Below are positions 1 to 33,440 of a DNA stretch of 35,456 nucleotides, one piece after another. The notes below the pieces were generated by a model, which searched no databases, was not told the origin of the DNA, and worked only from the letters and a program-made list of their open reading frames with translations. Within the stretch, counting starts at the first letter, position 1. Each line of letters opens with the position of its first letter. The position numbers and the translations under genes were made by a program. The DNA comes from Octopus bimaculoides (lineage: Eukaryota), in contig NC_069009.1 in assembly GCF_001194135.2 (NCBI RefSeq), positions 568,873-604,328 of the forward strand. The letters run 5' to 3'.

Positions 1-284
1 AACGTGCAAATGGCTGAGCACTCCACAGACACGTGTACCCTTAACGTAGTTCTCGGGGATATTCAGTGTGACAAGGCCGACCCTTTGAAATACAGGCACA
101 ACAGAAACAGGAAGTAAGAGTGAGAGAAAGTTGTGGTGGAAGAGTACAGCAGGGTTCACCACCATCCCCTGCCGGAGCCTCGTCAAGCTTTAGGTGTTTT
201 CGCTCAATAAACACTCACAACGCCCGGTCTGGGAATCGAAACCACGAGTCCGCTGCCCTAACTACTGGGCCATTGCGCCTCCAC
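1..284 (-). mobile_element. tRNA-derived SINE, family A (3' end runs off the window)
   Basis: Reverse complement starts GTGGAGGCGCAATGGCCCAGTAGTTAGGG (Pol III A box) followed by a GTTTCGATTCC B box. Closely similar copies at 11805, 15382/16773, 24788 and 28731. Confidence 0.85.
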
Positions 285-325
285 TGTGAGTAAAATACCC
301 TAACCACTAAGCCATGCCACTTCAC
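285..325 (-). mobile_element. Head remnant of an older SINE (family B) belonging to the duplicated gene unit
   Basis: ATACCCTAACCACTAAGCCATGCCACTTCAC matches the heads at about 8862-8890 and 22642-22672 and sits at the same position relative to the acceptor. Confidence 0.65.
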
Positions 326-794: not shown

Positions 795-1179
795 AATATC
801 ACACCATGTTGACAGAAAAGAAATTTCTTCATTCAGATGTGCCTCTAATATTCATTGAGTAAAGGAAGACCATGGTACATTCTTCCATACATCAAACTCT
901 TTATATAAATAAAATCTGCAACAAACGATGGGAAAATGCTTCTTGTAGACAAGGAAATTAACAGCAACATCTTCTTGTCTTCACTGTCTGGAATGTAGAG
1001 ATGATCAATTTAGAGGTTAATTAAGGCCACGTAACTTTACAGAGGATTTGAAAGTTTTCACCTGAAGATTTACATATGAAATAAGATGACAGATGAAAGA
1101 AACATAGCATTGAATTATTCTCTCAAAATAGTGTTGTGAACCGTAGAAATAAGGAAAACACTATCATTGTTCTCTGATA

Positions 1180-2394
<1,215 letters not shown>

Positions 2395-2631
2395 CTGTAT
2401 AAAAACTTATTAAAATAGGACAAGGAATTATGAATATTTTGTCTGCTAAAAGACAGGGTTTATTATTCTTCAGGCTTCACATTATCAACTTCAGTTTGTT
2501 CAATGTTAATATGAAATTCATGAATATCAGCTTCAATGTCATGTATATATCTAAAGATATCAACACGGAGATGACTTTGATTTCTGAAGATGATTGTGCT
2601 GGATTTTTGAGGAATTTGTTAGAAAATAATG

Positions 2632-2637
2632 AATAAA
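2632..2637 (+). terminator. Candidate polyadenylation signal of ZNF-1
   Basis: AATAAA in the conserved 3' UTR block. Equivalent hexamers at 5542, 10869, 14887, 24702 and 28560 after other genes. Confidence 0.5.
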
Positions 2638-3162
2638 AGTTTTAAGTGATATTGATTTTGTCTATGTTATGTTTTCATCATCATCATCTTTATATTTTAT
2701 GGTAGTGAAATGAAGTTAGCACCAAAATAAAGCAAGAAATACCTATAACATAGGGATTTAGTTTACAGGTGATGTACACAACTAAGTACGCTAGGTAAGT
2801 GCTGTAATGGATTACTAGGGCCCCAAAGTTATATCCAAGACGCTAGTATCGATAGGAAGATCCTCAGCCGAGACCAAAAAAAGGTGGGGGTGGAAATTAA
2901 CCAGCCTTGAAGGTGGTAGCAAGTGTGTGGAAAACGAATGTTCTCTCAGGAGTGGGGAAGTGTGACAGGTGCTGCTCCACGTTCCTGTCAGATTTGGTTT
3001 GGTTTCTTTGGCCGTAAGCCCTTAAGATACATAGTATATATTTTATAAATATGCCTGGTCAAGTATCATAATAGCATGAAACTAATAGCACTTTCAGTTG
3101 TGTATTTAATTTCATATATGTATGTGTGTGTGAACACGTCAATATGATAATTAAAATAAGTA

Positions 3163-3378
3163 CTCTTATTTCTTTCAGTCATTTGACTGTGGCCATGCTG
3201 GAGCACCGCCTTTAGTCGAGCAAATCGACCCCAGGACTTATTCTTATCCTTTTTGCCGAACCGCTAAGTTACAGGGATGTAAACACACCAGCATCGGTGG
3301 TCAAGCGATGTTGGGGGAACAAACACACACACACACACATATATATACATATATACGACAGGCTTCTTTCAGTTTCCA
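3163..3378. mobile_element. Interspersed repeat fragment (SINE-like) with internal (CA)n/(TA)n
   Basis: CAGTCATTTGACTGTGGCCATGCTGGAGCACCGCC...TTTTGCCGAACCGCTAAG...GTCAAGCGATG; diverged second copy at about 11125-11230. Confidence 0.6.
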
Positions 3379-3624
3379 AGATCACATAGATAAAAGTTGA
3401 TTTCAGTGATACAGAATTTTCACTCGAATAGGCTATTTATTATGCAAATCTTACATGTAAATATATCCTCTCAGGGGAATATGACATTTCACCTTGATTG
3501 GAAACAATTCAGAGTTCAAAATCTGCCTCAATAAACTGTGAACCATGCAAGCATTGATAAATCTGCATTGAAATGATGAGAATGTTGTTCTTGTAGAACT
3601 TGCTATGTTGAATTAATGTTTTGT

Positions 3625-3657
3625 TCAATATCTTAAGGTTTTCTTGTATTATTTCAG
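3625..3657 (+). promoter_or_regulatory. 3' splice acceptor of ZNF-2 (diverged copy)
   Basis: TTTTCTTGTATTATTTCAG|AATATCACACC followed by the family leader sequence. Confidence 0.65.
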
Positions 3658-4028
3658 AATATCACACCCTGTTGGCATAAAAGAAATTTCTTACATCGGA
3701 TGTGCATTTGATAGTTTTATCAACTTACATTGACTAAAGGAAAACAATATATTTATAAGAAGCATTCATCAAACAAAATCTATGACACGATGGAAAAATA
3801 TTTCTTCTAGACAATGGAATTAACAGCAGCATTTTCTTGTCTTTGCTGTCTGGAATGTAGAGAAGATGATCGCTTTACAGGTTAATTAAACTTGGATATC
3901 TTTGCAAAGGAGTTGACAATTTACATCTGCTGTTTTAGATAAGCAAGGTCACAGATTCAAGAAACATCACATTGAATTATTCCCTGAAAATAGTGACTTA
4001 CCTGAATACAAACTTCATTGTGACATGT

Positions 4029-5351
4029 ATGACAAATTATTCTCTCATAATGAATGATTTAACTAAACAAGAAAAACCTCATACAGGAGAGAAGCCACAT
4101 CACTGTATTATCTGTGGTAAATCATTCTCTCAAAGTGGTGACTTGACTAAACACAAACGTACACATACAGGAGAGAGGCCGTATCATTGCAATATGTGTG
4201 GTAAATCGTTTTCTGACACAAGTCACTTGAAAACACATGAACGTATTCATACTGGTGAGAAGCCATATTGCTGTGATATCTGTGGCAAATCATTCTTCCA
4301 AAGTGGTAACTTAACTAGACACAAACATACACATACTGGAGAGAAGCCATACCATTGCGATATCTGTGGTAAATCTTTCTCACAAAGTTGTGAACTGAGC
4401 AGACACAAACGTGTTCATATGGGTGAGAAGCCATATCAATGTAATATTTGTGGTAAATCATATTTTCAAAGTGGTGACTTGACTAAACACAAATATACAC
4501 ATACAGGTGAGAAGCCATATCATTGTGATATCTGTGGTAAATCATTTTCTGTTAGATTTAACTTAAATATACACAAACATACACATACAGGAGAGAAGCC
4601 ATATCGCTGTGATATCTGTGGTAAATCATTCTCTCGAACTAGTAATTTGACTGCTCACAAATTCATTCATACAGGGCAAAAACCATATCATTGTGATATC
4701 TGTGGTAAATCCTTCTCTGTTAGATTTAGCTTAACTATACACAAGCATACACATACAGGAGAGAGGCCATACCATTGTGATATCTGTGGTAAATCATTCT
4801 ATCAAAGTGATGACTTGACTAAACACAAACATACACATACAGGAGAGAAGCCATATCCTTGCGATATCTGTGGTAAATCATTTTCTCAAAATGGTAGTTT
4901 GACTACTCACAAATTCATTCATACGGGACAAAAACCATATCATTGTGATGTCTGTGGTAATTCATTCTCTCGTAGTAGTCACTTAACTAAACACCAACGT
5001 ACACACACAGGAGAGAAGCCACATCAGTGTGATATCTGTGGTAAAAAATTTTCTTCCACCAGTCACTTGAAAATGCACAAACGTATTCATACTGGGGAAA
5101 AACCATATCATTGTGATATCTGTGGTAAATCATTCTCTCAAAATAATCACTTGACTAAACACAAATGTACACATACAGGTGAGAAGCCATATCATTGCAA
5201 TATTTGTGGTAAATCATTCTCTCAAACTAGTCGATTGAATATTCACAAGCATATTCATACAGGTGAGAAGCTATATCACTGTGACATCTGTGGTAAATCA
5301 TTCTCTCATAGACCTAACTTGAATGTACATAAATGTATTCCTACTGGATAG
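4029..5351 (+). CDS. ZNF-2: C2H2 zinc-finger protein, 14 intact fingers plus one lacking its last His
   Basis: First in-frame ATG at 4029; family-conserved ATG at 4050 (the track start 3972 is TTG). Stop is TAG in place of the GAG of a TGEKP linker, followed by a decayed finger. Confidence 0.9.
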
Positions 5352-6930: not shown

Positions 6931-7153
6931 ATTGATTATGATTTTTTTTCAGTCCTACCACGCCAGTCCCGACCGATTTTTCTTTTTTTCATTACTACAC
7001 ACATGGGAGAAACCTTTTCGGTTAAAAAAAAAAAAAATCTTTTCAGAGGAGACGAAAGTGCGTGATATAAGGAAGATTTGGCTGTTGTTTCTAGCACATC
7101 GCAAGAGCACCTTCCTTATTTTTTTCTCTCTCAGATGTGGGTCCTGATGACCG

Positions 7154-7187
7154 TAACCCTGACCCTGACCCTAAACCTAACCCTAAC
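7154..7187. repeat. Short degenerate (CCCTAA/CCCTGA)n tract
   Basis: TAACCCTGACCCTGACCCTAAACCTAACCCTAAC followed by ACTAGTTTTGTGAGATTTGGCTGTTAT; the same cassette is at 18123-18200. Confidence 0.7.
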
Positions 7188-8692: not shown

Positions 8693-8890
8693 TTGCAAAT
8701 GGCTGAGTACTTCACAGACATATGAGAAAACTAGCCCTCTGAATTATAGATTAGGGTCAGTTTTGCTAGCTGAGTGAACTGGAGCAATGTGAAATAAAGT
8801 GGCTTGGAGACTAGATGCCCCACTGGGTATTGAACTCATGACCTTGCCACCAGATGCAGATACCCTAACCACTAAGCCATACCACTTCAC
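8693..8890 (-). mobile_element. Old SINE, family B, with MIR/CORE-like segment; part of the ancestral gene unit
   Basis: GAGTGAACTGGAGCAATGTGAAATAAAGTGGCTTG and a tRNA-like head. Positionally equivalent copy at 18802-19035, remnants at 285 and 22642. Confidence 0.65.
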
Positions 8891-9056
8891 AGGTGAAAGC
8901 AGAGAGAAGAAAGAAAAAAGCTAAGACATATATAATTTGAGAAATATAGGAAAATCTATATACAGAATGTTGTAGAAGTTTCAATGCCTCAATGGACTCC
9001 AGCCCATGCAAATGGATGACGGTTGATGTAAAATTCGCAATATTGAATTATTGTCA

Positions 9057-10745: not shown

Positions 10746-11374
10746 GCATCAGTGTCCAAATTTATTACATGACAACAATAAAGACTATTTTGTCTGCTAA
10801 AAGACAGGGTTTTTTTCCCCTTCATCAACTTCAATACTGTGAATGTGAACCTCAAATTTTTGATAATCAATAAAAAAAATGTTGACTCTGAGATAATTTA
10901 ATTACTGAAAATGTTTGTGATTGGATTTTGAAGTATTTATTAAAAAAAAAATAAATGAATAAAAAATTTATGTGTTTGTTTTGTTATTCTTTATCTATTC
11001 TTTGTCTCCTTTATACTTGAAATATCTCAATTGGCACAATGGCACACCCATTCAATACTATTTCCCCCATTCCTAGTTTTAGGGGGTTTTGTCATGCCAT
11101 GCACTTGGTGACCCTGTCGGGTCTGATGCTTATTCTCTCAGTTCTTTTTGCCGAACTGCTAGGGGTCGGGGACACAAACACACCCGCATCAGTTGTCAAG
11201 CGATGGCAGGACACACAGACATATGTGACGAAGGGGAGGAGAAAGGTGGCTCTATGGTACCATGGAGATCTCAGAGAGAGTATTTGCCCTCAACAGAATG
11301 GACGATTACGAAACGGAGTATAGATGCAGCGTTCTTTAGATCAGTGTCAATTGTGAAGGAAAGAGAATCATCAG

Positions 11375-11528
11375 AAAGGAGAGGAAATGACGTCAGGAAG
11401 GGACCGCAAGTAAGACGGCTTGACGTCAAACCAGGAAGCCTGAGGTTGAAGACGTCTTCTTTATTACGGTGTCTGCGATGGGAGTCAAGTCGTGAGCTGG
11501 AAATGGCCTCTGAGTAGAATATGTGAGT
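11375..11528 (+). promoter_or_regulatory. Candidate promoter and non-coding first exon of ZNF-4
   Basis: Two perfect CRE palindromes TGACGTCA (11388-11395, 11421-11428), a GC/CpG-richer patch and donor GAATAT|GTGAGT at 11523. Homologous to 24832-24981. Confidence 0.6.
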
Positions 11529-11589
11529 GCACTTTCTTAAAATAATCTGGTGAGAATTTCAAATAACTTGAAGATGAAGTTGTTAACAG

Positions 11590-11804
11590 AATGGGACAAA
11601 CAAAAGCACTGGAACCTAATCAATGGCTCAGTAGAGACATCGATTAGGGAATTAAAGAAATACAATCGTGTAACGGGAAATAACTTCTACAACACCTAAC
11701 CAAGTTCCAAGTAAATTAATTAAGTTGATTAATTACTGAACTCGTTTTAATGTGAATACGGTAAATTGACAAAGGTTTATTTTAAGGCTGTAATGGTGAT
11801 AATA
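11590..11804 (+). promoter_or_regulatory. Conserved upstream block of unit 4
   Basis: GGGAAATAACTTC (11675-11687) and GAATACG|GTAAAT (11761). Confidence 0.5.
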
Positions 11805-12079
11805 GTGGAGGCGCAATGGCCCAGTGGTTAGGGCAGCAGGATCGCAGTTTCGATTCCCAGACCGGGCGTTGTGAGTGTTTATTGAGCGAAAACACCTAAA
11901 AGCACCATGAGGCTCCAGTAGGGGGTGGTGGCGAACCCTGTTGTACTCTTCCACCACAACTTTCTCTCACTCTTCCTGTTTCTGTTGTGCCTGTAATTCA
12001 AAGGGTCAGCCTTGTCACACTGTGTCACGCTGAATCTCCCCGAGAACTATGTTAAGGGTACACGTGTCTGTGGAGTGCC
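11805..12079 (+). mobile_element. tRNA-derived SINE, family A
   Basis: GTGGAGGCGCAATGGCCCAGTGGTTAGGG (A box TGGCCCAGTGG), GTTTCGATTCC B box; body matches 1-284. Confidence 0.88.
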
Positions 12080-12454
12080 CAAACGGTGAGGTGGGTGCAT
12101 CCCCGGAAATCCTCTGGCCCCAATTTTGCAAGAAAATTTTTTTGTGAACGTTTTTTTTTTATGTTATCATCTTAGTTGACCTAATATACCACAAATGCAT
12201 TTTTTCTGTGGAAAACGGAGGAGGTGGGGTAGGATGCACTCACAAGCGTTTTCTAGAAAATTTTTTTATCTTAGCTGACCTTGTAATACACCGTAAATGA
12301 ATTTTTGCCATACATTAATCAATAAAACAAAATTTTGCAGGACATTTTGGGTATGGGAAAGTAATTTACAAGTTTCAATGCCTCACTGGTTTCTGACCCA
12401 TGTACACATAGACATTAAATGATGACAATTGATGTTGAAATATTTGCAATGTTG

Positions 12455-12649: not shown

Positions 12650-12730
12650 ATGATGAACAATTGGAAATCTATGATGAACAATTGGAAATCTATGATGAAC
12701 AATTGGAAATCTATGATGAACAATTGGAAA
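12650..12730 (+). repeat. 21-bp tandem repeat (ATGATGAACAATTGGAAATCT, about 3.9 copies) in the ZNF-4 leader
   Basis: Three full identical units and one partial; single-copy in the ZNF-7 leader (about 26779). Confidence 0.95.
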
Positions 12731-15381: not shown

Positions 15382-15660
15382 TGTTGGCACTCCATCGCTT
15401 ACGATGTTGAGGTTTCCAGTTGATCCGATTAACGGAACAGCCTGCTCGTGAAATTAACGTGCAAGTGGCTGAGCACTCCACAGACACGTGTACCCCTAAC
15501 GTAGTTCTCGGGGATATTCAGCGTAAAAAGGTGTGACAAGGCTGACCCTTTTGAATTACAGGCACAACAGAAACAGGAAGTAAGAGTGAGAGAAAATTGT
15601 GGTGGAAGAGTACAGCAGGATTCGCCACCATCCCCTGCCGGAGCCTCGTGGTGCTGTAGG
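15382..15660 (-). mobile_element. tRNA-derived SINE, family A, 3' part (runs into a gap)
   Basis: Matches 1-190 and extends through the family tail TGTTGGCACTCC...GAAATTAACGTGCAAGTGGCTGAGCACTCC. Confidence 0.85.
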
Positions 15661-16772: not shown

Positions 16773-16820
16773 CGAAACCGCGAATCCGCTGCCCTAACCA
16801 CTGGGCCATTGCGCCTCCAC
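16773..16820 (-). mobile_element. 5' head of family-A SINE (probably the same element as 15382-15660)
   Basis: CGAAACCGCGAATCCGCTGCCCTAACCACTGGGCCATTGCGCCTCCAC after a 10-N gap (16763-16772). Confidence 0.8.
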
Positions 16821-16829
16821 TGGACGAGG

Positions 16830-17190
16830 AGAAACACTGGTACAAATCAACCTGTCAGAGCCATCTATTGGAGAATTGAAGAATACAATCAAATCAAGGG
16901 AAATAACTTCTAACACTTCAATCACGATCCAAGTAAATTATCAATTAAGGTAATTGAGTACCGGTCACCGACTCGTTTTTATCTGAATACGGTAAGTTGA
17001 CAAAGATTTGCTTTAAGGCTGTTATGGTGTTGATAATAATGTAAATAATAGAATTATGTCAATGTCGATGTTACAGTAATTATTTCGAAGCGGAAACTTA
17101 ACATCAGGAAAATATATTTCCTCGTCTTAAATAACAACTTCCAAACTGAAATGTTGATCTGTTGTTTATGAAAACCTATGATCGACTCTT
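16830..17190 (+). promoter_or_regulatory. Conserved upstream block of unit 5 with candidate donor at 16992
   Basis: GGGAAATAACTTC (16898-16910) and GAATACG|GTAAGT. Confidence 0.55.
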
Positions 17191-18122: not shown

Positions 18123-18175
18123 CTAACCCTGACCCTAACCCTAACCCTGACCCTAACCCTCAACCTAACCCTAAC
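18123..18175. repeat. Degenerate (CCCTAA/CCCTGA)n tract
   Basis: About nine hexamers next to the gap; same downstream flank as 7154-7214. Confidence 0.75.
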
Positions 18176-18801
18176 ACTAGTTTTGTCAGATTTGGCTGTT
18201 ATTTCTAGCATGTAAATAGCCTGCTTGGTGTGTGTGGGGGGGAATTGAAATCTTTCAAAAATTTTTTTTTCAGAATCGGAATCTCCATAGCCTAAAACGT
18301 GGGATTCCGTAAAAAAAAATAATAAATAAGGGGAGGAAAGGTTCAGATTACATATAGTCCATCTCTACCGAATATGCTTTTGTTATTTCTAGAGACACTC
18401 CAGGGTTTAGTGTTACATGTGATATAAAGTAAATATATTAAAGATTTGGTGGATTAACAGTAATTGAAAGTTGTTAGATGTTCTTTAAATTTAATTACTG
18501 CGTAATGAGAAAAAGCTGCCTACTTAATTTTGATAAAAGTACAAATCAGATAGGGTATGTCTACATAAACGTGCCCCACCGATTTTCCTTCCCTGTGACT
18601 TGCTGTAAAATTGGTATTTTCTCATGAAATTTTCTATGATTATATTTCAGATGATGTAGGTTATGACTGTAATACTTTTCAGATGATGTGGATTAGAATT
18701 GTATAGGAATGTGTTGTGAAAAACGCCTTCAGAGACGGTGGAATATAGAAGAATTTCGGATGATTCACATGCCTCAATTTTGTTTCCTCATAATTTACAG
18801 A

Positions 18802-19280: not shown

Positions 19281-19566
19281 AATATCACATCATGTTGATG
19301 TAAAAGAAATTTCATCATTCAGATGTGTCTCTGGTATTTTTATTGACTTCCATCAACTAAAGGAAGACCATATATTTATAAGGAGAATTCATTAATAATA
19401 CACCAACCTCTCTATATAAATAAAATCTATAAAAAACAAGAAAATAATTCTTCTGGGTGATGCAATTAACAGCAAGATCAGTTTACAGGTTAATTAAGCT
19501 TGGATAACTGTACAAAGGAGTTGTCAGTTTTCACCTGATTTAGATGTTAAATAAGATCACAGATGA

Positions 19567-19949
<383 letters not shown>

Positions 19950-20051
19950 NNNNNNNNNNNNNNNNNNNNNNNNNNNNNNNNNNNNNNNNNNNNNNNNNNN
20001 NNNNNNNNNNNNNNNNNNNNNNNNNNNNNNNNNNNNNNNNNNNNNNNNNNN
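19950..20051. other. Assembly gap (102 N)
   Basis: Run of N between two sequences that share an identical 163-nt segment. Confidence 1.
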
Positions 20052-20648
20052 ACTCAACCGAACAGAATCATGTTCTTAGAAATGAAAAAAACACTATCAT
20101 TGTGATTTGTATGACAAATTATTCTCTCATAATGAATCGTTTAACAAAACCCAAAAACCCTGACACAGGAGAGAAACCATATCATTGTGATATTTGTGGT
20201 AAATCATTCTCTCATAGGAGTAACTTAACTGAACACAAGCGTAAGCATACAGGAGAGAAGCGATATCGTTGTAATATCTGTGGTAGATCATTTTCTCTAA
20301 ACAGTGTTTTAACTAGTCATAAACGTATTCATACAGGAGAGAAGCCATATCGTTGTGATATTTGTGGTAAATCTTTTTCTGAAAATAACACTTTAACTAC
20401 TCACAAACGTATTCATACAGGAGAGAAACCATATCATTGTGATATCTGTGGTAAATCATTCTCCCAAAGTGGTGTCCTGACTAGACACAAACGTACACAT
20501 ACAGGAGAGAAGCCATATCATTGCAATATCTGTGGTAAATCATTCTTCCAAAGTGGGGACTTGACTAAACACAAACTTACACATACAGGAGAGAAAGAAT
20601 ATCATTGTAATATCTGTGGTAAATCATTTTCCAGAAATAGCCACTTGA

Positions 20649-22137
<1,489 letters not shown>

Positions 22138-22641
22138 TATGTGATAAATCTTTCTCTGAGAACAGTTGTTTGATAAATCACAAACGCATTCATACTGGGG
22201 AAAAACCACATGAGTGTGATATCTGTCATAGATTTTTCTCTGGACATTGTGAGTTAACTACACACAAGCGAGTTCATACAAGAGAAAAACCATATCAGTG
22301 CAACATCTGTGGTGAATCTTTCTCTCACAGAGCTAGCATAACTATACATAAGCGTATTCATACTGGAGAGAAACCATACCAGTGTGATATCTGTGGTAAA
22401 TCATTTTCTCAAAGTAGTGACTTAACTAGACACCAGCGCATTCATACAGGAGGGGAACCATATCATTGCAATATATGCGGTAAATCATTCTCTCAAAAAC
22501 GCTACTTAAGTACACATGTGAATATTCACACACAAGTGTAACTGTATTGATATCAAAATTTATTACATCACAACAACGACAGCTATTTTATCTGCAAAAG
22601 ACAGGTTTTTTTTTCTCTCTTCAAATTTGATATATCAACTT

Positions 22642-22672
22642 ATACCCTAACCACTAAGCCATGCCACTTCAC
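22642..22672 (-). mobile_element. Family-B SINE head remnant at a deletion junction
   Basis: The ZNF-5 3' UTR sequence stops at ...TATCAACTT and is followed directly by ATACCCTAACCACTAAGCCATGCCACTTCAC. Confidence 0.7.
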
Positions 22673-22838
22673 AGGTGAAACAAGTGAAAGGAGAGAAAAG
22701 AAAGAAACAAATGAAAACGAGATAAATTATTAAAGAAATGTAGAAATGCCTCAATAAATTCTGACCCGTGCAAACATAGACATTAAATGGATGACAGTGT
22801 TGATGTTGGAATATTTGCAATGATGAACTTCTATGTCT

Positions 22839-22881
22839 TTTAACCATCCTCTTTATCTTACTGCTTCTTTTCCTATTTCAG
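22839..22881 (+). promoter_or_regulatory. Branch point and 3' splice acceptor of ZNF-6
   Basis: TTTAAC...TTCTTTTCCTATTTCAG|AAAATC, 43 nt. Confidence 0.8.
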
Positions 22882-23252
22882 AAAATCACATCATGTTGAC
22901 GTGAAAGAAATTTCTTCATTCAGATGTGCCTTTGATATTTTTATCAACTTTTATTGACTAAAGGAAGACAATATATTTATAAGGAGCATTCACCAATACA
23001 TCAACTTTTTTATATAAATATAATCTATGAAAAACAACGGGAATATATTTCTTCTGGATGATGGAATTGACAGCAATATCACTTTACAGGTTAATTAAGC
23101 TTGGATAACTTTCCAAAGGAATTGACTATTTATATCTTCTGTTTTAGATATGAAGTAAGATCACATAGCATTAATTATACTTTGAAAATAGTGGCTCAAT
23201 TAAACAGAAACATATTTATAGAAATGAGGAAAACAATATCATTGTGAGATGT

Positions 23253-24326
23253 ATGACAAATTATTCTCCCATAATGAATAATTTAACTGAAGAAAAAGAC
23301 TCTCACACAGCAGAAAAGTCATATCGTTGTATTATCTGTGGTAAATCATTCTCTAAATGTGGTGACTTGACTAAACACAAACGTGTACATACAGGAGAGA
23401 AGCCATATCATTGCAATATGTGTGATAAATCATTCTCTGAATCTAGTAACTTGAGAACACACAAACGTATTCATACAGGAGAGAAGCCATATCATTGTAA
23501 TATTTGTGGTAAATCATTCTCCCAAAGTGGGGGCTTGACTAAACACAAACGTACTCATACAGGAGAGAAGCCATATCATTGCAATATCTGTGGTAAAGCA
23601 TTCTCTGAATCCAATAGCTTGAAAACACACAAATGTATTCATACAGGAGAGAAGCCATACAGCTGTGAAATATGTGGTAAATCAGTTTCTGAAGTCTATC
23701 ACTTGAAAAAACACAAACTTATTCATACGGGTGAGAAGCCATATAAGTGTGATATCTGTGGTAAATCGTTCCCTGAAAACAGACGCTTGACTAAACACAA
23801 ACGTATTCATACTGGTGAAAAACCATATCACTGTGATATCTGTGGTAAATCATTTTTTGAAAATAGCGCTTTAACTAGCCACAAACGTATTCATACTGGA
23901 GAGAAGCCATATCATTGTGATATATGTGGTAAATCATTCTCTGAAAGCAGTAGTTTGACTAAACATAAATACATTCATACAGGAGAAAAACCATATGAGT
24001 GTGATATCTGTAGTAAATCTTTCATTAGATGTTTTGAGTTAACTACACATAAGCGTGTTCATACAAGAGAGAAACCATATCAGTGCAACATCTGTGGTGA
24101 ATCTTTCTCTCACAGAGCTAGCATAACTATACATAAGCGTATTCATACTGGAGAGAAACCATATCAGTGTGATGTTTGTGGTAAATCATTCTCTCAAAGT
24201 AGTGACTTAACTAGACACCAGCGCATTCATACAGGAGGGGAACCATATCATTGCAATATCTGCGGTAAATCATTCTCTCAAAAACGCTACTTAAGTACAC
24301 ATGTGAATATTCACACACAAGTGTAA
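23253..24326 (+). CDS. ZNF-6: C2H2 zinc-finger protein, 12 intact fingers, complete to the ancestral HTQV stop
   Basis: ATG at 23253, conserved ATG at 23274 (the track start 23244 is GTG). All twelve fingers keep both Cys and both His. Confidence 0.93.
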
Positions 24327-24430
24327 CCATATCAATATCAAAAATTTATTACGACAGGACAACAATTATGAATATTTTGTTTGCCAAAAGACAGGGCTTA
24401 TTCTTCTAGAAGCTTGATGTTATCAACTTC

Positions 24431-24609: not shown

Positions 24610-24787
24610 ATGTATATATATGGAAATATATCAACACAGCAATGACTTTGATTTGTTAAGATGATTGTGCTGGATTTTTGAGGAATTTATTATGAGAGAA
24701 TAATAAATAAATGGTTAAACTGATGTTGACTTTGTCTATCTTGTATTTTCATCATCATCATTCTTTAGAGATATTTACTATGCTGGC

Positions 24788-24811
24788 GTGGAGGCGCAAT
24801 GGCCCAGTGGT
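24788..24811 (+). mobile_element. 24-nt head of a family-A SINE
   Basis: GTGGAGGCGCAATGGCCCAGTGGT, truncated and joined to the unit-7 promoter block. Confidence 0.75.
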
Positions 24812-25383: not shown

Positions 25384-26307
25384 NNNNNNNNNNNNNNNNN
25401 NNNNNNNNNNNNNNNNNNNNNNNNNNNNNNNNNNNNNNNNNNNNNNNNNNNNNNNNNNNNNNNNNNNNNNNNNNNNNNNNNNNNNNNNNNNNNNNNNNNN
25501 NNNNNNNNNNNNNNNNNNNNNNNNNNNNNNNNNNNNNNNNNNNNNNNNNNNNNNNNNNNNNNNNNNNNNNNNNNNNNNNNNNNNNNNNNNNNNNNNNNNN
25601 NNNNNNNNNNNNNNNNNNNNNNNNNNNNNNNNNNNNNNNNNNNNNNNNNNNNNNNNNNNNNNNNNNNNNNNNNNNNNNNNNNNNNNNNNNNNNNNNNNNN
25701 NNNNNNNNNNNNNNNNNNNNNNNNNNNNNNNNNNNNNNNNNNNNNNNNNNNNNNNNNNNNNNNNNNNNNNNNNNNNNNNNNNNNNNNNNNNNNNNNNNNN
25801 NNNNNNNNNNNNNNNNNNNNNNNNNNNNNNNNNNNNNNNNNNNNNNNNNNNNNNNNNNNNNNNNNNNNNNNNNNNNNNNNNNNNNNNNNNNNNNNNNNNN
25901 NNNNNNNNNNNNNNNNNNNNNNNNNNNNNNNNNNNNNNNNNNNNNNNNNNNNNNNNNNNNNNNNNNNNNNNNNNNNNNNNNNNNNNNNNNNNNNNNNNNN
26001 NNNNNNNNNNNNNNNNNNNNNNNNNNNNNNNNNNNNNNNNNNNNNNNNNNNNNNNNNNNNNNNNNNNNNNNNNNNNNNNNNNNNNNNNNNNNNNNNNNNN
26101 NNNNNNNNNNNNNNNNNNNNNNNNNNNNNNNNNNNNNNNNNNNNNNNNNNNNNNNNNNNNNNNNNNNNNNNNNNNNNNNNNNNNNNNNNNNNNNNNNNNN
26201 NNNNNNNNNNNNNNNNNNNNNNNNNNNNNNNNNNNNNNNNNNNNNNNNNNNNNNNNNNNNNNNNNNNNNNNNNNNNNNNNNNNNNNNNNNNNNNNNNNNN
26301 NNNNNNN
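25384..26307. other. Assembly gap
   Basis: Run of N. Confidence 1.
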
Positions 26308-28730: not shown

Positions 28731-28984
28731 GTGGAGGCGCAATGGCCCAGTGGTTAGGGCAGCGGACTCGCGGTCATAGGATCGCAGTTTCGATTCCCAG
28801 ACTGGGCGTTGTGAGTGTTTATTGAGCGAAAACACCTAAAGCTCCACAAGGCTCTGGCAGGGGATGGTAGCGAACCCTGCTGTACTCTTTCACCACAACT
28901 TTCTCTCTCTCTTACTCCCTGTTTCTGTTGCGTCTGTAATTCAAAGGACCAGCCTTGTCACACTGTGTCACGCTGACTATCCCC
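28731..28984 (+). mobile_element. tRNA-derived SINE, family A (3'-truncated)
   Basis: A box TGGCCCAGTGG, B box GTTTCGATTCC; body matches 11805-12079. Confidence 0.88.
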
Positions 28985-30050: not shown

Positions 30051-30387
30051 TGAAATTAAGGTTAATGTTGACATTGGTACCCGGAAACGAAATCGAAAAA
30101 GACAAAAATAGGGCAACGTGTACAAAAGAAAAAGATGTGAAAAACGAATCTGAACTCAAAGATGTGCAGAAAGCAATAGGGGTGAGAGGCCTTCGGAAAA
30201 TTCACTAGATCCGAAGTTTTTCCCTCATAACTTTTAGGAACGGTATAGCTTACGATTATAAAGATATTTGTGGGGAAAATCTTTTCCTTTGGGGTAGGGA
30301 AAGGACTTCGAAAAATCCGATATTTTTCCCTCGTAGAATTGAGGAAAAATGGAGTTTGAGGAAAATCTAATCCTTTTGAAATCAGAA

Positions 30388-30430
30388 ATTAACTATCCTC
30401 TTTATCTTACTGTTTCTTTTCCTATTTCAG
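30388..30430 (+). promoter_or_regulatory. Branch point and 3' splice acceptor of ZNF-8
   Basis: ATTAAC...TTTCTTTTCCTATTTCAG|AATATC, 43 nt. Confidence 0.8.
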
Positions 30431-30832
30431 AATATCACATCATGTTGACACAGAAGAAATTTCTTCATTCAGATGTGCCTTTCATATTTTTATCTCGTTT
30501 CGTCAACTAAACCAAGATGACATATTCAACAGGAGCATTCATCGATACATCAAAATTTACATGAATACAAACTAAGAATACAATATTTTTCTTGTTTTCA
30601 CTGTTTGGAATTTTGAGTAAGTGATTGCCTTAGATGTTAATTAACGGGTGGATACCTTTACAAAGGAGTTGACAATATTCACCTGCTGATCTATATATTA
30701 AATAAGATCACAAATGAAAGAAACACAGCTACAAATTATTTTCAGGAAATAGTGGCTGAACTGAAAACAAAATTTGTTTATAGAGATGAAGGAAACATTA
30801 TTTTTGTGATATGTATAATAAATTATTCTATC

Positions 30833-32240
<1,408 letters not shown>

Positions 32241-33009: not shown

Positions 33010-33440
33010 AGTTACTTGATTCCACGCCAAAAAATCCGATTTCTTTTTTCTCAATGAAAATCGTGAATGTGAAAGTACCAAAGTTTACCCCAGTGAGTAT
33101 CGCCATCTATAGGAGAAGTCATGTATTATAATCATGTAAGGGGAAATAACTTCAGCAGCACTTGAGCCTCACGCCAATTTAATTGTTAATTATATTCGTT
33201 AATTACTGATCACTGACTCGTTGTTTGTATCTCGATCGGGTAAGTTGAGAAAGATTTACTTTAAGCATGTAATCATGATAATGTAAATAATAGAATTATG
33301 TGAACATTTCGATATTAAAGTAATTATTTCGAAGCGAAAACGAAACAAAATCAGGAAAATACATTTCCTCGTCTTAAATAACAACTTCAAACGGAATTGT
33401 TTATCTGTTGTTTATGAAAACCTATGATCGACTGTTATAC
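33010..33440 (+). promoter_or_regulatory. Conserved upstream block of unit 9 with candidate donor at 33240
   Basis: GGGAAATAACTTC (33141-33153), GATCGG|GTAAGT. Confidence 0.5.

Follow-up and report, generated by a model that had tools for sequence, protein, structure and literature searches.

A zinc-finger gene without a first exon in a tandem octopus cluster, and the routes by which it might be expressed

How might a gene be expressed once a deletion has removed its first exon? The question is raised by ZNF-6 of Octopus bimaculoides, a C2H2 zinc-finger gene with an intact finger array that belongs to a same-strand tandem cluster of the octopus lineage-specific expansion. In coleoid cephalopods, the C2H2 zinc-finger genes have expanded to thousands of copies with preferential neural and embryonic expression, and the octopus expansion comprises approximately 1,800 genes. 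The window, i.e., the whole stretch of 35,456 nucleotides (nt) that was analysed, was placed at approximately 568,873-604,328 of chromosome CM046629.1 (GCA_001194135.2) through three of its open reading frames (ORFs) that occur in the deposited record. Its base composition is 34% G+C (66% A+T), and it contains nine head-to-tail C2H2 zinc-finger units (Z1-Z9), all on the plus strand and all with a finger period of 84 nt. Z2, Z5, and Z6 are referred to here as ZNF-2, ZNF-5, and ZNF-6, and P1-P9 denote the blocks upstream of the corresponding units, with P1 lying outside the window, upstream of its start.

The answer begins at the junction of ZNF-5 and ZNF-6, where only 340 nt separate the end of the ZNF-5 stop codon (22541) from the end of the ZNF-6 acceptor AG (22881), compared with stop-to-acceptor distances of 1.5-4.8 kb in the other units. 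The junction and ZNF-6 itself have the following features (a slash within a motif marks the splice junction; UTR, untranslated region).

22539-22541, plus strand: ZNF-5 stop codon (TAA), closing the canonical family C-terminus ...IHTQV
22542-22641, plus strand: first 100 nt of the ZNF-5 3'UTR, retained and alignable with the proximal 3'UTR of other units
22642-22881, plus strand: last 240 nt of the family intron, retained, with a 37-nt internal deletion relative to other units
22861-22881, plus strand: ZNF-6 acceptor, pyrimidine tract and AG (CTTCTTTTCCTATTTCAG/AA), the most conserved part of the unit
22882-23273, plus strand: non-coding 5' part of the ZNF-6 exon, with stops in all three frames
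23274-24326, plus strand: ZNF-6 ORF, with an ATG conserved in nine units, 12 fingers at strict 84-nt spacing, and a canonical stop
24702-24745, plus strand: ZNF-6 family poly(A) module, AATAAA and a GT-rich downstream element

Homology to the family 3'UTR breaks off at ...ATCAACTT (22641), and from 22642 the sequence matches the intronic block found upstream of Z1 (295-400, 87%) and Z3 (8860-8898, 97%). The right side of the join begins in an old, minus-strand head of a repeat resembling a short interspersed nuclear element (SINE), ATACCCTAACCACTAAGCCATGCCAC (22642-22668), which is fuller in the Z3 intron. The spacer is contiguous, with the nearest assembly gaps at 21151-21750 and 25384-26307 (approximately 890 nt from the join), and it contains no family poly(A) module, exon-1 block, donor block, or 5' part of the intron. 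As this switch of homologies shows, a deletion has joined the ZNF-5 3'UTR to the ZNF-6 intron, depriving ZNF-5 of its terminator and ZNF-6 of its first exon. By the same alignments, the event was non-homologous and spanned at least about 1.4-2 kb, with breakpoints at position +100 in the ZNF-5 3'UTR and position -240 in the ZNF-6 intron. The original prediction, which had described a deletion at 22641/22642 after 100 nt of 3'UTR, a 340-nt spacer, and the loss of both the family poly(A) region and the donor block ahead of ZNF-6, is confirmed on each of these points. A tandem duplication of the terminal exon was considered in place of a deletion and is disfavoured: ZNF-5 and ZNF-6 are no closer to one another than other pairs are, except for a 294-nt tract discussed below, and the proximal 3'UTR of Z6 is 89% identical to that of Z4 and approximately 75% identical to that of Z5.

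What the spacer does contain is a plus-strand AATAAA at 22753-22758, followed by a GT-rich stretch at 22790-22810, which may serve ZNF-5 as a replacement poly(A) signal. The homologous site reads AATGGA in the promoter-bearing units Z3 and Z5 and ACTGGT in Z4. At this position, about 128 nt upstream of the acceptor, both Z6 (22753) and Z2 (at approximately 3527) read AATAAA, and Z9 reads AGTAAA.

To appreciate what ZNF-6 has lost, one must consider the architecture of an ordinary unit. As reconstructed from the alignments, the standard unit is a set of one or two short non-coding exons with a strong donor, an intron of 0.6-2.3 kb, and a single large exon. Starting at an invariant acceptor, the large exon would comprise a 5'UTR of approximately 390 nt, all of the finger ORF, and the 3'UTR together with a conserved poly(A) module, since the interval from acceptor to ATG in Z6 has stops in all three frames. 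When the 720 nt ahead of the conserved start codon are aligned, ATTTCAG/AA behind a pyrimidine tract is invariant in the nine units. The corresponding acceptor 22-mer, TTTTCCTATTTCAGAATATCAC, has nine matches at three or fewer mismatches, one per unit, and none in 100 shuffles. When all 1,783 AG dinucleotides were ranked by a simple pyrimidine-tract score, eight of the nine unit sites fell within the top 1.3%, with Z2 at the 93rd percentile. Mean pairwise identity reaches its maximum of 84-85% over the pyrimidine tract, the acceptor, and exon bases 1-59 (compared with 59-78% in the flanks), as expected of a splice site that is used. The ZNF-6 acceptor at 22881 lies in the top 0.4% of the ranking and differs from the family 22-mer at one position. 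At the 3' end of the unit, the family poly(A) module consists of AATAAA followed by the GT-rich element TGATTTTGTCTTTGTTGTGTTTT, and it lies 240-380 nt past the stop in five units.

2632: poly(A) module of Z1
10950: poly(A) module of Z3
14887: poly(A) module of Z4
24702: poly(A) module of Z6
28560: poly(A) module of Z7

Two further observations concern the unit as such. An upstream ATG (ATCATGTTGAC) located 11 nt into the large exon (22892-22894 in Z6) is invariant in all nine units, with a short ORF of varying length. A higher-order, three-unit repeat (P1/P4/P7) was also considered and rejected; the 3'UTRs group as Z1, Z4, Z6, and Z7 versus Z2 and Z3, and Z8 and Z9 are mutually closest.

The first exons are of two kinds, each with its own donor.

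P1 (upstream of the window), 6789, 11760, 16991, 25349, 29838, and 33239: donors of the donor block
P1 (upstream of the window), 11522, and 24975: donors of the exon-1 block
11353-11522, plus strand: P4 promoter and exon-1 block, with the donor TAT/GTGAGT after 11522 and the P4 donor block at 11589-11760
16857-16991, plus strand: P5 first-exon/donor block, the nearest visible one upstream of ZNF-6, with a perfect ACG/GTAAGT after 16991

The donor block ends in GAATACG/GTAAGTTGACAAAG and has seven matches in the window with none expected by chance; no match occurs within 19288-22868 or 802-3644. A more sensitive BLAST search added the blocks before Z9 (33068-33300), a unit that had at first looked like a third one without a first exon, and, upstream of the window, before Z1. 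The donor block precedes Z1, Z3, Z4, Z5, Z7, Z8, and Z9, leaving only Z2 and Z6 without it. The exon-1 block, ending in GAGTAGAAnAT/GTGAGT, is found only before Z1, Z4, and Z7 among the approximately ten units of the sample that includes the upstream sequence. Its promoter portion, with cAMP response element (CRE) and ETS motifs, occurs in P4 and, in degenerate form, in P7 only; the original prediction had treated a CRE/ETS promoter as the family norm, and in this it was mistaken. The P4 block is the sole CpG-rich segment of the window outside transposable elements, and it carries two perfect TGACGTCA sites (11388 and 11421) that are 33 nt apart and each beside a CAGGAAG, a count of two per window that carries no significance on its own, being reached in 8 of 100 shuffles. 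The ORF of exon 1 stops 5 nt before the donor and encodes no Pfam domain. A 142-amino acid (aa) ORF at 11089-11517 was discarded as a candidate, having no Pfam match and a 5' part that consists of a repeat found also at 3160-3350; this repeat (TTTTGCCGAAC..GTCAAGCGATG), distinct from the SINE-like one, spans 11089-11215 and 3160-3350.

The two kinds of donor are complementary. Units with the exon-1 GTGAGT have a damaged donor in the donor block (ACG/ATAAGT in P1, ACG/TTAAGT in P7, and ACG/GTAAAT in P4), whereas all four donor-block units without exon 1 carry a perfect GTAAGT. By our calculation, the chance of this exact three-versus-four partition among seven units is 1 in 35. The pattern suggests that each unit keeps one working donor, and it is the best internal evidence of donor use; on this basis, the donors appear to be under selection. 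In a second cluster, representing a more distant family, recurrence is limited to the donor motif and some short pieces of the acceptor and 5'UTR blocks.

Given this architecture, the most economical route to a translatable ZNF-6 mRNA would be splicing from upstream. By default, the deletion would have turned ZNF-5 and ZNF-6 into a single transcription unit, such that a polymerase entering ZNF-5 would meet no family terminator before ZNF-6, whose acceptor is intact. Any ZNF-6 mRNA would then most likely have an upstream non-coding donor joined to 22882. Candidate donors are those at 16991 and 17326, the latter belonging to a second copy of the P5 donor, and one that would be hidden in the assembly gap 19950-20051; those at 11522 and 11760 are less likely. 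All four visible donors had been named in the original prediction, and they do exist on the same strand, with 16991 and 17326 strong and 11522 and 11760 weaker. The shared exon had also been predicted to be non-coding, and this stands: any such exon must be non-coding because all three frames are closed over 22882-23273 and because the exon-1 ORF ends before its donor without a Pfam domain. ZNF-6 would thus be an alternative terminal exon, or a read-through (conjoined-gene) product, of the upstream unit. We read the arrangement as a chance outcome of birth-and-death turnover in the array that makes promoter sharing possible, and not as a dedicated system of the lola type. It is this route, through read-through or a shared exon, that we tentatively favour, judging its chances at a little under even.

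Several considerations weigh against the read-through route. The ZNF-5 acceptor (19280), which nearly matches that of ZNF-6 in strength, emerges in the transcript 3.6 kb ahead of it and would be expected to capture most splicing events. Between the two acceptors lie two sense-strand AATAAA motifs, one in a long terminal repeat (LTR)-like insertion (22065) and the other, with its GT-rich element, at 22753. An intact ORF may simply mean that the deletion was recent. The donor nearest to ZNF-6 may be unseen, inside the gap 19950-20051. The deposited annotation contains no coding sequence (CDS) for ZNF-6 at any of three start codons, and Z1, Z2, Z3, and Z7 are on record there; this is weak evidence, because at least one nearby model (Z8) looks ab initio. 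A lineage-specific ratio of nonsynonymous to synonymous substitution (dN/dS) is not computable for ZNF-6, because its finger array is a mosaic without a collinear sister. Finally, the unit statistics come from 7-9 units of an Illumina assembly in which seven runs of N (assembly gaps) make up 9% of the window length.

The gap at 19950-20051 deserves particular comment. The sequences on its two sides are identical over 163 nt (19604-19766 and 20052-20214) and then diverge to approximately 80%. The shared stretch is a contig-end overlap, and "ZNF-5" is probably two different units run together. The gap then probably hides part of another unit, which may include a 3'UTR, a first exon, and an intron.

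Turning to the gene itself, all 12 ZNF-6 fingers are canonical (C..C-12-H...H) and the frame is open to the ...IHTQV stop. Pfam recognizes zf-C2H2 and zf-H2C2_2 in 12 stretches (E values of 1e-66 and 2e-105), with linkers of the TGEKP type. An earlier in-frame ATG is present at 23253. In protein searches, the best full-length match has 61% identity, with vertebrate KRAB-ZNF proteins dominating, and the N-terminal 106 aa have no match above 68%. An exact look-up in a protein collection returned no protein encoded by the window, annotated Z1, Z2, Z3, and Z7 included, so that the absence of ZNF-6 there is uninformative. A decayed finger, 71% identical to 22450-22498, makes up the leader immediately before the start codon and extends over it (23226-23274), and the ancestral ORF therefore probably began further 5' than the present start.

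The integrity of the finger arrays across the cluster bears directly on the rival that survives best, namely that the deletion cut ZNF-6 off from transcription and left it a silent orphan, whose ORF is intact through recency or gene conversion and which is destined to become an unprocessed pseudogene. We consider this unlikely, though it is to be taken seriously.

Z6: 12 of 12 canonical fingers, open to a canonical stop
Z2: 14 of 14 canonical fingers
Z7: open ORF with 13 canonical fingers
Z1, Z3, Z4, Z5, and Z8: a frameshift or premature stop with further fingers after it; Z5 also carries the LTR-like insertion
Z9: ORF stopping after five fingers

Rearrangement in tandem arrays is expected to yield promoter-less copies as a by-product, and a birth-and-death array with six of its nine units already broken is where a silent orphan would be anticipated; the lack of an annotated ZNF-6 CDS also fits this reading. 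On the other hand, six of the seven donor-block units have broken arrays, while the three cleanest arrays include both of those that belong to units lacking a first exon, a coincidence with a chance of 3/36 by our calculation. The open frames claimed for both in the original prediction are thus upheld. Nor is there any extra decay in the Z6 acceptor or 5'UTR, and the acceptor flanks match the family consensus at 85% and 92%, as closely as those of any unit. The possible role of gene conversion is seen in the last three fingers of ZNF-5 and ZNF-6, which are 98% identical over 294 nt (22250-22543 and 24035-24328), up to the stop codon, compared with approximately 75% in the flanks. Such a tract bears the signature of recent gene conversion and would help to explain an intact but silent ORF. 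The two copies (Z5c and Z6) have since come to differ by only five nucleotides over these fingers, however, and four of the differences are synonymous, which is a weak sign of constraint given so few changes. Moreover, the conversion partner, ZNF-5, is itself broken and cannot account for the integrity of all 12 fingers. The deposited 162-aa model of Z8 (30349-30443 joined to 31674-32067) is no guide in this matter; it starts in an intron, ignores the family acceptor, and splices round the frameshift, an ab initio look that makes it uninformative on real splicing.

The other unit without a first exon is ZNF-2.

3644-5351, plus strand: ZNF-2, with an exon from 3658 behind a weak pyrimidine tract and a 14-finger ORF

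In the spacer between Z1 and Z2 (2182-3657), the poly(A) module of Z1 (2632) is preserved and an unrelated repeat occupies 3160-3350, but neither a donor block nor an exon-1 block was found, in agreement with the original prediction. Because its breakpoints differ from those of the Z5-Z6 spacer, the two losses of a first exon are, as read from the alignments, two independent events. The original prediction had credited both genes with strong acceptors, and this applies to ZNF-6 but not to ZNF-2, whose acceptor, at the 93rd percentile, has three mismatches and a 10-nt deletion and whose acceptor flanks are the most diverged of any unit's (63% and 80% to the consensus).

ZNF-6 could also be transcribed from its own or a borrowed local promoter, starting somewhere within 20786-23250, either in the LTR-like insertion or at a cryptic site in the intron or 5'UTR, with or without use of the acceptor. 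This is improbable but not to be neglected, and the insertion is one candidate source of such a promoter.

20786-22137, plus strand: LTR-like insertion in the ZNF-5 finger exon, with TG..CA ends and TATG target duplications at 20782-20785 and 22138-22141

The insertion carries plus-strand CCAAT (20965 and 21022), TATAAATA (21035), and AATAAA (22065) motifs, the promoter-like boxes falling within 20965-21042, and 600 nt in its middle are the gap 21151-21750. Its removal in silico yields CAT TGT GAT ATA TGT GAT AAA TCT (HCDICDKS) and restores the frame; no second copy of the element was found in the approximately 75 kb examined. The best donor of the element (after 21016), however, precedes its TATA box, leaving only weaker donors downstream (after 22248 and 22674), and its own AATAAA at 22065 precedes ZNF-6. 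A start closer to the gene would have other points in its favour. The claim in the original prediction that ZNF-6 has no room for its own promoter is overstated, as there is a distance of 732 nt from the ZNF-5 stop to the conserved ATG and a single exon contains the entire ORF. The donor-like CAG/GTGAAA after 22674 could pair with 22881, and a TATA-like TATATAAAT occurs at approximately 23010, the motif being present in seven of nine units. Strings of this sort are nevertheless common in DNA of 66% A+T, and the spacer and 5'UTR are AT-rich, CpG-poor, and devoid of family promoter motifs.

A bolder version of the sharing hypothesis would hold that octopus ZNF arrays routinely share non-coding first exons, with one promoter serving several complete-ORF finger exons and one array chosen per transcript. 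The donor-block exons would then be optional relays, P1, P4, and P7 being the only exon-1 blocks in ten units. We regard this as a doubtful proposition, slightly less probable even than a local promoter.

The assembly itself must also be questioned, for 22641/22642 could be a chimeric contig join at a repeat, with a true spacer of normal length. The scaffold is a gap-rich Illumina product with its seven gaps in the window and a demonstrable contig-overlap artefact at 19950-20051, and the sequence to the right of the join opens within a SINE-like repeat. That to its left, in contrast, is unique 3'UTR, no sequence of k-mer length common to both sides was seen, the surrounding sequence is contiguous and its nearest gap is 890 nt away from the join, and ZNF-2 shows a like loss with other breakpoints, all of which makes an artefact very improbable. 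Operon-like processing, in which cleavage at the 22753 AATAAA would be followed by trans-splicing of a spliced leader to the ZNF-6 acceptor some 105 nt downstream, has only its geometry in its favour (AATAAA and a GT-rich element approximately 105-130 nt before a strong acceptor) and can practically be dismissed, since the same acceptor is present in units with cis donors of their own and since we know of no report of spliced-leader trans-splicing from molluscs.

Other features of the window are of more general interest. Copies of the SINE-like repeat, approximately 280 nt long and 88-92% identical, are scattered in the spacers in both orientations.

11805-12081, plus strand: SINE-like repeat copy
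15-285, minus strand: SINE-like repeat copy
15470-15655, minus strand: SINE-like repeat copy
16773-16821, minus strand: SINE-like repeat copy
28731-28984, plus strand: SINE-like repeat copy
24788-24811: fragment of the SINE-like repeat

Rfam and tRNA scans found nothing, and the tRNA-like character of the SINE heads was judged by inspection. Telomere-like (CTAACC)n arrays are located at 7148-7184 and 18123-18179, inside introns, and each abuts an assembly gap. The Z4 5'UTR contains a perfect 21-nt tandem repeat of 3.9 copies (12650-12730) that is absent from the other units. Scanning of the minus strand and of small ORFs in 22500-23260 revealed nothing notable.

The deletion is, in itself, an ordinary product of tandem-array evolution, and the interest of the locus is whether intact, promoter-less exons use a neighbour's start. 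If transcripts of ZNF-6 and ZNF-2 start at the first exon of a neighbouring unit, then gene counts that assume one promoter per ORF miss regulation at the level of the cluster, and promoter sharing would couple the expression of different DNA-binding specificities. Were routine sharing to prove true, it would provide a cluster-level choice mechanism for the octopus ZNF expansion, a mirror of promoter choice in the vertebrate protocadherins. If the two genes are silent, they are snapshots of copy death in a birth-and-death array. A search of cephalopod genome papers (PMC12513265, PMC9068888, PMC9795677, PMC13218726) found nothing in them on ZNF exon structure or on the transcription of clustered copies.

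The closest parallel among known systems is the conjoined gene. Read-through transcripts are common in vertebrate KRAB-ZNF clusters. More generally, read-through (conjoined, tandem chimeric) transcripts of adjacent same-strand genes have been described in human RNA sequencing data (PMC5053695, PMC4136775, PMC4422297). As in these cases, ZNF-5 and ZNF-6 are adjacent and on the same strand, with an upstream terminator that is weak or absent (ZNF-5 keeps only the non-family AATAAA at 22065 and 22753), and the intergenic region would be spliced out from an upstream donor to the first downstream acceptor. As the upstream exon is non-coding here, the ZNF-6 ORF would be translated intact. Unlike conjoined genes, ZNF-6 is without any first exon, so that read-through would be its sole route and not a minor by-product.

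ZNF-6 may likewise be compared with an unprocessed pseudogene, being a tandem paralogue whose promoter and first exon were lost by deletion, but no disabling change is seen in its ORF, its acceptor, its 5'UTR, or its poly(A) module. The original prediction drew a loose analogy with lola and mod(mdg4) of Drosophila, and this holds insofar as several finger-bearing terminal exons, each with an acceptor and poly(A) signal, lie downstream of a common donor. In other respects, the analogy fails: the common exons of lola and mod(mdg4) encode a BTB domain, whereas in this cluster exon 1 does not code and every terminal exon carries an entire ORF; most units here have their own first exon, with only two of nine lacking one; and each of the variable 3' exons of mod(mdg4) has a promoter of its own and becomes attached through trans-splicing (PMC12692577, PMC6237743, PMC4387717). 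Finally, the clustered protocadherins and UGT1A, where variable first exons with their own promoters are joined to constant downstream exons, resemble this locus in the sharing of exons among tandem paralogues, although octopus protocadherins are reported not to use an exon-sharing mechanism (PMC9068888). Their topology is the mirror image of that considered here, in which the shared exon would be 5' and the variable exons 3', and nothing at this locus shows regulated choice.

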